Notes under the pieces: model-generated
Told to the model about the DNA's origin: nothing
What the model saw: only the letters and a program-made list of their open reading frames with translations
Database searches by the model: none
Part shown: positions 7,188 through 12,206 of the stretch, in pieces
Layout of the letters: each line of letters starts with the position of its first letter
Numbering within the stretch: position 1 is the first letter of the stretch
Made by a program: the position numbers and the translations under genes
NCBI GenBank assembly: GCA_038496445.1
Contig: JALMLS010000027.1
Coordinates: forward strand, 1 to 64,000
Direction of reading: 5' to 3'
DNA length: 64,000 bases
Source of the DNA: Trichosphaerium sp. ATCC 40318
Lineage: Eukaryota; Protista; Tubulinea

Positions 7188-8263
7188 TTACATTACAACG
7201 CATCCTTTTGATGAATCTAGAGGCTCTATTAGTAAGAGGTTGTTAAAACACCTTATGGTACCATTACCTTCACTACCATATATCTCAAGTAGTGAGCTGA
7301 CGTGTTCTTTAGTCAATTTTGACCCTGCAATATCACAATATGTTGAGAGTAGCCATTTATACAAATCAATACGTCCTGGTTCATTACCACGCGTAGAAAT
7401 ATATGTAGCAATAGTGCCATGTGCTTTAGCTAATTTGCAAGCCTAGAAAAATCATGATCAGCGCCAAAAAAGCAAAGTAATTTCAGTACTTGGTGCATAG
7501 ATGGATTTTCTTTACTACTAGTAGCATGATTTAGCACAATAACTTGGCGCTCTTACTAGTCAACGTACCTGACATTATTGCTTTTTGGTTTTTCAGTGTA
7601 CGCAACCAAACATCCAGAACCTAGTGTCGCGATTTCTGGCGTCTTTGAAAGCGTGTCAGTGTATTGTAAATTACATGAAGTGTACCCAAATTTGAGGGGC
7701 AAAGCCTGGTGATGGTAGTGGTGTTCCACCAGGCAGTGGTACTTCAAATGTCTTTTGTGTATTAGGGTTTCCTTTAACAATGAATCTGACATTAACTGTT
7801 AGGCACGCTTTTTTTTGTTTGGCGTACTGTTTTAGTAGTTTCTGTGCGTTTGCGAGACTTTGGTTGCTACCATGTGTATACGTAATAATTGCGATCCTGT
7901 ACGCTGAAGTTACCGCATTGATGAGGAAACTTTGTAATATAATCAGTTAATGCCTAAAGTAATAGTTTACGTACGGGTCGCATAAAAACTGCTCCAACGA
8001 AGAAAGATTTAAAGACACCCACAACGAATCCGTGCAAAATACTTGAGTACGCCTTTTAACGCCCAGGGTTGCTATACCAGGCCTACAAATGTCAATGTTC
8101 TTTACATTTATTCAAAAGTAGCTTACGTATTAGTTAGAGCAGCTGCTACATTGTCAGCTTCATCTCCGAGTACTAGCACTTCTATCTGTTTGGTTGTTAG
8201 AATAATTACAAAATCATCATTACTAACATCCTCATGGACTACGCTGTCATCAATGTCGCTCAT
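7188..8263 (-). CDS. Degenerate Ras-like small GTPase-fold protein with a C-terminal CaaX box (CVVM)
   Basis: Spliced model: IEVLVLGDEADNVAAAL...YRIAIITYTHGSNQSLANAQKLL...PQIWVLDVW...QACKLAKAHGTIATYISTR...KGCVVM-stop. Confidence 0.5.
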
Positions 8264-8505: not shown

Positions 8506-9638
8506 TCAGTTGTTTAAGGCTTTATGTTGAATAACTTTTACGCCAACAAATATCACTAGTGTCACGAGACCGAAAAAAATGAAACCGGCTTTGGCAACAC
8601 CTGCTGACTTGTCTTGAGCAAGCATTTGAAAGTCTAGTGCGCGTTCTTCCTCAGGATGATCGCTCAGTAGCTTGGCAATGAGACGACGAGATTCTCGCAC
8701 ATAACCGAGACTAATAAACGTAAATGAGGTTGCATGCAAAAAGATGCCAAAGAACTAACCGATAGTTCGCGTAAGCGAGGTAATACAAGCAATCCGCAGG
8801 TGTGTACGTAAATGTGTCCTCTCCAAATTGATTTTGAGTGACGTACTTGAACAACTCTACGCGCTACTTTAGAAGGTTTGCAAAGTAGTACTACACTTCG
8901 CACCTGTCATGTCTCTGATTCCTTGTTTGATTTCGTCGCGTTCTGTTGAGCGGATTAATTCTGTGGCAGTATCATAATCTACAACAACTTCTTCTGATTC
9001 ATTAGTCTACATTGTATTAGATTATGTGAGCGTGAGGGGGAAAGCAAAGCACAATTGCTTTAATGGGTTTTGAAAAACATTGTGATTGTTTTGCATTAAT
9101 TGGTGTTTTCTACGCACGTTACCAACGCCGTCTTGTTGAATGGTTATTTGGTTGATGTCCAAGCGAAAATATTCCAATTCTGTCTTGATCTTTTCTGTTG
9201 ATACACCCACAACTGGTAAATACAAAGTGCCTACATTAATAAGCGTTGGTTGCGATATAGGATCGTTTGAGTTTAATTAGTGAGCTATTCGAGCTTTTAC
9301 CGCAGTAGCATACTACGCAAAGCGCTCTTGTGATGGTTTGAGCGCTTGGTTCACATAGTTTTGCAATACAGAAAAGGTGAGTTGCATACCTGAGCGGTAT
9401 ACGTCTAAAATAGCCTCAAACACTCTTGGGTTTCTTCAATGGCATTAGTACTCAATAAGAAAAGTGGCGCCTACCTATCGAAGAAGTGACCGCCATCTGC
9501 GTCAGGAGCTGGTCTATTGGCTTTATCGTTAGGATTGAACATGCGGGCCAATCGTGAGCTTGGGTAGCGTTGGAAGGTGCTCGTAGCAACCATAAACTTA
9601 GTACCACCAAAATTTAAAAGGACTCTGTCTTCAGACAT
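8506..9638 (-). CDS. KCTD/T1-type BTB domain fused to a Fis1-like TPR region and C-terminal tail anchor
   Basis: MSEDRVLLNFGGTKF...YPSSRLARMF...HFFDRNPRVFEAILDVYRSG...ELEYFRL spliced in frame to LIRSTERDEIKQGI...DCLYYLAYANYRLGYVRESRRLIAKLLSDHPEEERA, then a TM segment (GFIFFGLVTLVIFVGV) and a short basic tail. Confidence 0.8.
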
Positions 9639-9959: not shown

Positions 9960-12206
9960 TTACAAAAGTAAAGCAATGCAAACAAGCATAGATGCAACGA
10001 AGTTGACATATAGTAGTGAAGAACTACCAGTTAAATCGGTGCCCATAGATGGCTCTTGTGTCACTGGACTTCCAGAGTCATTTGGTGTATTAGTTGTGTC
10101 TACTGGAGTACCAGCGTCATTTGGTGCATTTGTTGTGTCCACTGGAGTACCAGCTTCTGTAGGGGTATCACCCGATGGACTGGATGTTGGGGTGAATTCG
10201 TGGTACTAATAATTGCTTATTAGGAGTAAACAATAGGTTACTTGTTTTACCTCATAAGCTCCAATATCAGGGCCAGCTCCTTCTGGTCTCTTATAATTTC
10301 TTTTATCCTTATCTACACCAGCACGTGCATCGCCTTTATTGAGAATACGAGTAAGTTTATTATGATAGAAAGACATTTGCGTGCCTGCATCGATAAAGCT
10401 AGAAGTAGATTTAAGGGAAAAGTCATCTTTAGCAACATTTGTAAATCCATAATCCGATTCTACGGATGAAGAACAAATATTTCCAGCGTCAGTGCGGCGT
10501 CCGCCAGGTAAGCTCACACATGCCCATTGTACAGTAGAAGTATACTGAGTGTAAATCACAATATTGTTAAACGCCTAGTATCAATATAATTAACGAAGTG
10601 AACTAAGATCAAACTTACCTCGAAAGTATAAAGTGGCGATTCGCCATTGTCAGGATTATGTACTGAAATACCACGATCTCCACGTGATGATACTATCGTA
10701 TTATGATTAATCTTTACCCAAGTACCCGGGCTAGTTCTAGCCGTATCAATAGACATTGTAATGCCTCTACCACCTAAGCAAAGTCAAGAACAGCAACCTT
10801 TACGGCGAAGGAATAAAACTTAAGCTACAAACCTGTGTTGACAAATACGTTGTTATAAACATTAGTGTCTCCTTGACCATGATAAATTAGACCTGCGCCT
10901 GTCCCTTCTTTAACAAAATTATTGAATATAGAGCCTAGAACTCATTATTTAGCACTAGAGAGGTAAACCATTTGCACCTTTGAATCCTGGGTTTATAAAT
11001 ATTCCCGAGTTTTGATATAGTTCATCGTCTGTTCCATAGTTTTCTACAATGTTATCATATACCTGTGCATCTTCAATAGCACACCCGACCTGCATTCAGA
11101 GTGAGGATCAATATATATAATACAACGAGTACCTGAATGGCATCCCAACCCGTATTTATCACAGTGTTGTTATAGATCCGAAGCCCTTTTGTTGATTTCT
11201 GTTAGTAGCCTCATTACTTGTGTTCCATACCTGTAATATCATGAGGTTTACCACCTGTTGACGTAACAAACTCGTAATTAAAATACCCAACGTAAAATCC
11301 TTCAGTAGCAATATCGTGAATGTACATATCATGAAATATTGCGTTCTTCCTATGGTATTGCTTAGGCAAAAATAATTTCAAGCATCTAAATCTCACAATA
11401 CAAAATTTCTTCTCCAATACTCCGTATTTGTATCCGATGGGTCTGTTTTGCATGTCACAGCGGCGTGGCCATGGTTATCGAATATCTCAACCCTAGAAAC
11501 TTCCACATCGGAAGACCCTTTAAATTCGAAGTTAATTTGGATCAATATTGAAAACAAAAATCACGTGCCACGCTCTATGCCAAGTCCTTTCGAACAATCA
11601 TGTATTTTTATGCCGTATTTCTCCTTATCATCCCCATCGCCAATAATCTTCAGGTAAGACGTATCTCGAGTGATAACACCTTGGACACCAGTTAACCCAA
11701 ACAAATAATAAAAAGGGTAAGAACACGTGAGCAAAACAAAATTAATAAGTGTTTCTTGTTCACAATTACCATGAGACACTTTCATATCTCCATTCACAGC
11801 ACTAATATCAGCTACACCATCGCAGTTTGTAAGAACGTAAGGTTGTGCTACAAAGTGTGAGTCAATCAGTAAATTCATTTCCCAAATACTACGTCCAACG
11901 CTGTAAAATTACGTACATGCACTGCCAACAAAGTTGTCAATGAAAAATCCTGAGGCGTAAGTCTTTGCCCCAGAAAAACAAATAACACTTCCTTTTGGTA
12001 GGTTTAATACGTCGTTATCGGTTATAACGTATGTGGCGCTCGGATTAGACTACAAATACGTAAAAATCCATAAATAAGGCATTTAAAAATCATCGTACGG
12101 CTGGTTCAATCACGTGGTCGCACTCAGAGCATGCCCTATTAGCGTATGTAAGGTGTGCTACTGCGAGAAACAGCACAATTACGTTAAATATTGTGCAAGC
12201 GTTCAT
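9960..12206 (-). CDS. Secreted, probably GPI-anchored right-handed beta-helix (pectin-lyase-fold) surface protein
   Basis: Signal peptide MNACTIFNVIVLFLAVAHLTYA; beta-helix segments YIHDIATEGFYVG, IYNNTVINTGWDAIQVGC and VYNNVFVNT; DFSLKSTSSFIDAG...PDIGAYE; T/P-rich stalk; hydrophobic C-terminus. Confidence 0.75.
10062..10154. repeat. About 2.4 copies of a 39-bp coding tandem repeat (TPVDTTNAPNDAG stalk)
   Basis: Units start at 10062, 10101 and 10140, e.g. actggagtaccagcgtcatttggtgcatttgttgtgtc. Confidence 0.85.

Follow-up and report, generated by a model that had tools for sequence, protein, structure and literature searches.

A KCTD-type BTB domain and a tail-anchored Fis1 TPR region probably joined in a single gene of Trichosphaerium sp.

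The window analysed here, a stretch of 64,000 nucleotides from Trichosphaerium sp. ATCC 40318, carries on its minus strand (9638..8506) a gene in which a T1/KCTD-type BTB domain precedes a Fis1-like TPR region and a C-terminal membrane anchor. The gene model, drawn from the sequence, comprises six exons and five introns, and the BTB and Fis1 parts very probably belong to one fused single gene. On balance, we favour the view that its spliced product would be an organelle-surface receptor with a Fis1-type anchor, pre-clustered by the BTB domain. The predicted features are given below in the order of transcription; all five introns are bounded by GT and AG.

Exon 1, 9475..9638, minus strand: opens with the ATG at 9638-9636, covers the N-terminal half of the BTB domain (T1/KCTD type) and breaks off within the Arg codon of FFDR.
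Intron 1, 9434..9474, minus strand: 41 nt, phase 2; retention leads to an immediate stop.
Exon 2, 9390..9433, minus strand: BTB core motif NPRVFEAILDVYRS.
Intron 2, 9231..9389, minus strand: 159 nt, phase 1; absent from the related contig L001.
Exon 3, 9118..9230, minus strand: C-terminal portion of the BTB domain, running into the linker.
Intron 3, 9007..9117, minus strand: 111 nt, phase 0; at the BTB/Fis1 junction.
Exon 4, 8904..9006, minus strand: acidic linker and putative Fis1 helices 2-3 (Fis1_TPR_N region).
Intron 4, 8857..8903, minus strand: 47 nt, phase 1.
Exon 5, 8760..8856, minus strand: end of helix 3, lengthened loop and putative Fis1 helix 4 with the motif CLYYLAYANYR.
Intron 5, 8711..8759, minus strand: 49 nt, phase 2; within the Arg codon of YR|LG.
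Exon 6, first part, 8599..8710, minus strand: putative Fis1 helices 5-6 (remainder of Fis1_TPR_C).
Exon 6, tail anchor, 8539..8598, minus strand: predicted transmembrane segment, VAK-AGFIFFGLVTLVIFVGV.
Exon 6, end, 8506..8538, minus strand: C-terminal tail of basic character, KVIQHKALNN, followed by two stop codons.

Joining of the exons is predicted to give a frame of 726 nt, i.e. 241 codons and a stop. Read-through of any of the five introns leads to an in-frame stop, and exon 4 begins right at the acceptor TAG and has its sole in-frame Met close to the 3' end. With a stop in each intron and no start in exon 4, the long frame exists only as a spliced product; since exon 4 opens at the acceptor and has no upstream Met, the Fis1-like half lacks a start of its own. 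The first-pass annotation had placed a phase-0 in-frame intron at about 9008-9118, and this is borne out by intron 3 (9007-9117), across which the frame joins. The motif DCLYYLAYANYRLG that it quoted from the Fis1-like region is likewise present, but only when intron 5 (8711-8759) is removed. The G+C content is 0.43 in the exons, as compared with 0.39 in the introns and 0.35 in the flanks. We infer the splicing of the window gene from its sequence, and the support is comparative, coming from the two related environmental contigs described below (L001 and L002). At the end of the gene, the tandem stop TGA TGA occupies 8511-8506 and is directly followed by an A-rich, AATAA-like stretch.

Relatives were found by a HMMER scan (phmmer) of exon 6 against 1.84 billion representative proteins, which returned four matches. 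Two of these, a Calx-beta repeat protein (P0001) and a long bacterial-type TPR protein (P0002), are unrelated. A third, P0004, is matched by exon 6 at residues 270-327 with an E value of 6.6e-4, and comparison of P0004 with exon 6 of the window by tblastn gave an E value of 1.8e-10. P0004 is a 333-aa protein from L001, a 3.7-kb JGI metagenome contig with a G+C content of 0.39. In Pfam it scores 39.6 bits for BTB_2 (positions 1-89) and 41.8 bits for Fis1_TPR_C, and it ends in a hydrophobic C-terminal segment resembling a transmembrane tail. Thus, BTB, Fis1 and anchor follow one another in the same order as in the window, within a single stop-free ORF of 1002 nt (L001:1569-2570). As no stop separates BTB from Fis1 in L001, whether the DNA is spliced or not, the two halves are not separate genes there. 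Transcripts from two separate genes had been named as the outcome that would speak against a fusion, and in L001 BTB_2 and Fis1_TPR_C are found instead in one uninterrupted frame.

P0004 itself is a gene-caller's prokaryote-style read-through of genomic DNA that contains three short introns, which were read from the contig DNA as follows.

L001 intron, 1764-1813: 50 nt.
L001 intron, 1897-1936: 40 nt.
L001 intron, 2082-2141: 60 nt.

With these removed, the L001 product is predicted to have about 245 residues. Residues 1-38 of P0004 precede what is likely the true start, about 50 residues of its BTB region are an out-of-frame reading of the exon between two introns, and a 20-residue stretch rich in Leu, Phe and Ser is a read-through polypyrimidine intron.

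All six window exons are collinear with L001, and about 80 of the 183 aligned residues are identical. The exons were aligned piece by piece; a MAFFT alignment of all the short pieces jointly scattered them and was not used. Intron 1 of the window gene corresponds to the L001 intron at 1897-1936, both being at the same position and in phase 2 within the Arg codon of FFDR|NP. The third L001 intron (2082-2141) is in phase 0 and lies in the equivalent acidic linker, like intron 3 of the window. The two remaining correspondences come from P0003, encoded on L002, a contig of 959 nt with a G+C content of 0.50 that starts inside the exon for helices 2-3, so that the upstream BTB region is cut off. Intron 4 of the window equals the L002 intron at 92-164 (phase 1, five residues past a conserved Gly), and intron 5 equals that at 265-336 (phase 2, splitting the Arg codon of YR|LG). 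Fis1 helices 2-3 are conserved among the window gene, L001 and L002. The common intron positions and phases, together with the sequence similarity, place the three genes in one family.

These three are the members of the BTB-Fis1 family that were found. Scans of metagenome and viral contigs gave no further relatives, and no paralogue of the gene was detected within the window. A word-index protein search returned nothing for exon 6, only P0004 itself for P0004, and nothing at E <=0.01 for the Fis1 half of L001.

In the window, the BTB-Fis1 gene lies between two minus-strand ORF clusters, separated from them by about 320 nt on the upstream side and about 240 nt on the downstream side. The upstream neighbour (9960-10600, minus strand) has a Thr/Pro/Asp-rich repeated stalk followed by a hydrophobic C-terminal segment, and the stalk is preceded by what looks like the end of a beta-helix/pectate-lyase-like domain (...GAGPDIGAYE...); judged by these features, it is probably a surface glycoprotein gene. 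On the other side, an ATG-initiated acidic ORF (MSDIDDSVVHEDV...) at 8123-8263 on the minus strand, about 240 nt past the BTB-Fis1 stop, probably represents exon 1 of the following gene on that strand, and the intergenic spacers would therefore be short, 250-320 nt. The neighbour in L001 is a 343-aa WD40/PROPPIN-type protein encoded at 226-1257 on the minus strand, opposite to the fusion gene; its exact sequence was absent from the protein collection searched. The window has no matching WD40/PROPPIN neighbour, hence synteny with L001 is not conserved.

By its sequence, the BTB part of the window gene is a complete T1/KCTD-type domain, as the first-pass annotation had read it, exon 1 scoring above the BTB_2 cut-off and exons 2-3 aligning with the second half of the domain. 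By itself, exon 1, which encodes 54 residues, reaches 23.2 bits for Pfam BTB_2 (cut-off 21.4) over profile positions 1-47 of 94, and with 23.7 bits it is above the Pfam cut-off for BTB_3 as well. Its best matches in the PDB are KCTD7, KCTD16, KCTD15, KCTD1 and the T1 domains of Kv3/Shaw. Compared with exons 1 and 2 of L001, exon 1 has 10 of 23 and 13 of 26 residues identical, respectively. Exon 2 shares 9 of 14 residues with L001, and residues 121-138 of P0004 map to it in tblastn. Together, exons 2 and 3 align with the stretch of L001 exon 3 that matches BTB_2 positions 49-89. Taken alone, exons 2 and 3 are too short to score in Pfam, and a phmmer search of the PDB with exon 3 alone gave no BTB domain.

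For the C-terminal half, the first-pass annotation had made the Fis1 assignment depend on matches to Fis1 profiles. The window exons remain below the cut-offs when scanned singly, but the Fis1 half of L001, 142 residues uninterrupted by introns, reaches 43.8 bits for Fis1_TPR_C (PF14853; cut-off 25.3). In the PDB the first 14 matches of this half are all Fis1, yeast Fis1 (1y8m) being found at an E value of 4e-9 and human Fis1 at 1e-6 to 1e-5 (1pc2 at 1e-6), and the identity to yeast and human Fis1 is about 25-30%. The alignments start at residue 41 of yeast Fis1 and residue 32 of human Fis1, i.e. at helix 2. An AlphaFold model of L001:2142-2567, with a mean pLDDT of 69, shows five helices and ends in a long transmembrane helix, and in a Foldseek comparison of this model with the PDB the top 24 matches were all Fis1 with a probability of 1.00.

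Profiles built from the family point in the same direction. The exon-4 profile (A4, three sequences) matched 11 PDB chains at E values up to 1, all of them Fis1, the best match being to residues 31-58 of human Fis1 at 8e-4. The exon-6 profile found full-length human Fis1 in the correct place at an E value of 0.12, ranked under chance matches to Csm6. Taken together, the sequence matches and the fold predicted for L001 indicate that the C-terminal half of the family is Fis1.

A weak similarity to Csm6, a bacterial ribonuclease, was seen with exon 6 of the window (8564-8685, residues 9-49; E about 0.02). It was rejected as a chance match, there being no collinearity elsewhere; its recurrence with the three-sequence exon-6 profile is most likely due to chance too.

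The identity of the Fis1 half in the window rests on exon-by-exon searches and on homology to L001. Exon 4 alone gave 13.8 bits for Pfam Fis1_TPR_N (E 0.047), whereas the cut-off is 25. No Pfam match was obtained with exon 5 or exon 6 singly, and phmmer searches of the PDB with each of them gave no Fis1; Fis1_TPR_C is split between these exons by intron 5, which cuts it after about the first 14 profile positions. In the ESM Atlas, the nearest clusters to exon 6 are Fis1_TPR_C (score 0.92, 203 of 256 features in common). The exon 5 motif CLYYLAYANYR aligns with CLYYISFGYYR inside the Fis1_TPR_C match of L001, and the CLYY-type motif of L001 in turn aligns with that of yeast Fis1. Exon 6 of the window likewise aligns with the region of L001 matched by Fis1_TPR_C.

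The C-terminal transmembrane segment proposed earlier holds up: its hydrophobic core of 17 residues has a mean Kyte-Doolittle value of 2.6, is preceded by Lys and lies 7-10 residues from the C-terminus. The ten residues that follow, KVIQHKALNN, include two Lys and one His. The tail anchor as a whole takes up the last 30 residues. Anchor and short basic tail are kept in the window gene, L001 and L002. A short transmembrane domain with a basic tail is typical of outer-membrane and peroxisomal tail anchors. Upstream of helix 2 there are only the acidic linker and the BTB domain, and helix 1 and the N-terminal arm of Fis1 are absent. Taken together, the C-terminal half encoded in the window appears to consist of Fis1 helices 2-6 and the anchor. 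Thus, the Fis1-like TPR region of the first-pass annotation stands as regards helices 2-6, but the Fis1 part is incomplete, as helix 1 and the arm are missing.

T1/KCTD BTB domains are described as self-assembling and often binding Cullin-3 (PMC7618933, PMC6722564), and Fis1 is described as a tail-anchored TPR adaptor whose core TPRs lie between helices 1 and 6 and which carries an N-terminal arm (PMC8027123). On this background, the spliced product of this nuclear gene, about 241 residues long, would begin with a BTB domain of the T1/KCTD type, joined through a short acidic linker to Fis1 helices 2-6, which would form both core TPRs and the helix that caps them; a single transmembrane helix and a short basic tail would follow. 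Like Fis1, it would be inserted post-translationally into the outer mitochondrial membrane, the peroxisomal membrane or both, and the TPR and BTB parts would then face the cytosol. The BTB domain would take the place of helix 1 and the regulatory N-terminal arm. By analogy with other T1/KCTD BTB domains, it would hold the chains together as a fixed tetramer or pentamer. The outcome would be a pre-clustered, multivalent Fis1 surface for partners in fission or organelle turnover, devoid of a gating arm.

Alternatively, the locus might yield two gene products. Intron 3 would then be often retained, or contain a poly(A) site, to give a soluble BTB-only protein, and a truncated Fis1 would start from the Met located towards the 3' end of exon 4, the fused form being minor or absent. 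Retention of intron 3 does lead to a stop after 31 codons, and the predicted BTB-only product of 135 residues is a plausible protein. However, no in-frame ATG precedes the Fis1_TPR_N helices in exon 4, and the conservation of helices 2-3 in the window gene, L001 and L002 would be pointless if they were untranslated. In addition, the BTB and Fis1 halves of L001 share one stop-free ORF, in which the linker intron is also in phase 0. Two products are thus considered highly improbable.

Other readings accept the fused protein and differ in what it does. It might be an organelle-anchored substrate adaptor of Cullin-3, in which the BTB domain recruits Cul3 and the Fis1 TPR binds substrates, so that proteins docking on Fis1 would be ubiquitinated in place at the mitochondrial or peroxisomal surface. 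Such a role would be compatible with oligomerisation, and the KCTD/T1 subtype of the BTB domain suits it, as does the order of its parts, with the BTB at the N-terminus and a protein-binding module at the C-terminus, as in KCTD adaptors. However, KCTD16 is among the closest solved matches, and KCTD12 and KCTD16 are not known to bind Cul3. KCTD1 is presented in the literature consulted as atypical, being a transcriptional repressor; not every KCTD protein is a ligase adaptor. We regard this role as unlikely. The Fis1-derived half may, on the other hand, have left organelle division and serve only as a TPR and anchor scaffold by which a BTB signalling module is brought to a membrane, perhaps that of the ER or of another compartment. 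The loss of helix 1 and the arm, the lengthened loop between helices 3 and 4, the modest identity of about 25-30% to yeast and human Fis1 and the weak profile scores of the window exons themselves would all fit such a scaffold. Retention of the most conserved Fis1 motifs, and of the short transmembrane domain with its basic tail in all three members, argues against it, and we consider it very unlikely.

The protein favoured here, a pre-clustered receptor with a Fis1-type anchor, is predicted to share with Fis1 the two core TPRs, the capping helix 6, one transmembrane helix at the C-terminus and a short tail of basic character, and it keeps the motifs A-x-x-L-[VI]-R-S...G-I and C-L-Y-Y...Y-R-L-G. 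It differs in that helix 1 and the arm have given way to a BTB domain (about 100 residues) with an acidic linker, in a helix 3-4 loop several residues longer than that of yeast, and in its size of about 241 residues as compared with about 150 for Fis1. With the KCTD and Kv T1 proteins (BTB_2, PF02214) it shares the N-terminal T1-type BTB domain, KCTD7 and KCTD16 being the best solved matches, whereas its C-terminal module is an anchored Fis1 TPR in place of the C-terminal domain of KCTD proteins or the ion channel. A further parallel is KEAP1-PGAM5, in which a BTB-Kelch Cul3 adaptor is tethered at the outer mitochondrial membrane. There, too, a BTB protein is on the mitochondrial surface, but it is of the BTB-BACK-Kelch type and held non-covalently via a separate anchored protein, whereas the anchor of the fusion is in the same chain.

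A link between the two modules is known from yeast, where independent fis1 deletion strains are reported to gain WHI2 stop codons, i.e. loss-of-function mutations, and the WHI2 product to have the KCTD-type BTB domain in common (PMC6126876, PMC8027123). Whi2 and human KCTD11 thus resemble the fusion in this domain. Whi2 and Fis1, however, are two yeast proteins with no reported physical link, whereas in the fusion the two parts are one polypeptide.

The BTB-Fis1 combination is a new domain architecture composed of two well-known modules. In the literature searched, which was of limited reach, no paper combined Fis1 with a BTB domain and a tail-anchored protein, and nothing relevant was found on the domain architecture of Fis1 or on Fis1 in amoebae. 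The yeast WHI2 genetics is the only other connection between BTB and Fis1 found there. In the ESM Atlas, the large clusters closest to the fusion protein contain ordinary stand-alone Fis1 proteins with lengths of 134-149 aa, and none of them has a BTB domain. Given the limited reach of the literature and database searches, rarity of the fusion is claimed and not its absence elsewhere.

Fis1 is described as one of just two fission proteins conserved from yeast to humans (PMC10694664), and its exact role in human fission, like that of the N-terminal arm, is referred to as an enigma (PMC8027123). In the protist protein an oligomerisation domain stands where Fis1 has its arm and helix 1, which may make it a natural experiment on whether clustering suffices to activate Fis1. 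A natural fusion of two domain types is a kind of evidence that suggests a functional link. The gene could be a 'Rosetta stone' for FIS1 and WHI2, meaning that KCTD-type BTB proteins and Fis1 would act physically together on organelles and that the partners would have been joined into one chain in the protist lineage, where they might convey Cullin-3, or a signal of the nutrient/TORC1 type, to mitochondria and peroxisomes; this extension by analogy is quite unlikely in our estimate. The fusion is the first physical hint found of a link between a KCTD-type BTB domain and Fis1, which earlier was only an oddity of yeast genetics, and if its BTB domain binds Cullin-3, it would be a ubiquitin-ligase adaptor built straight into an organelle tail anchor.
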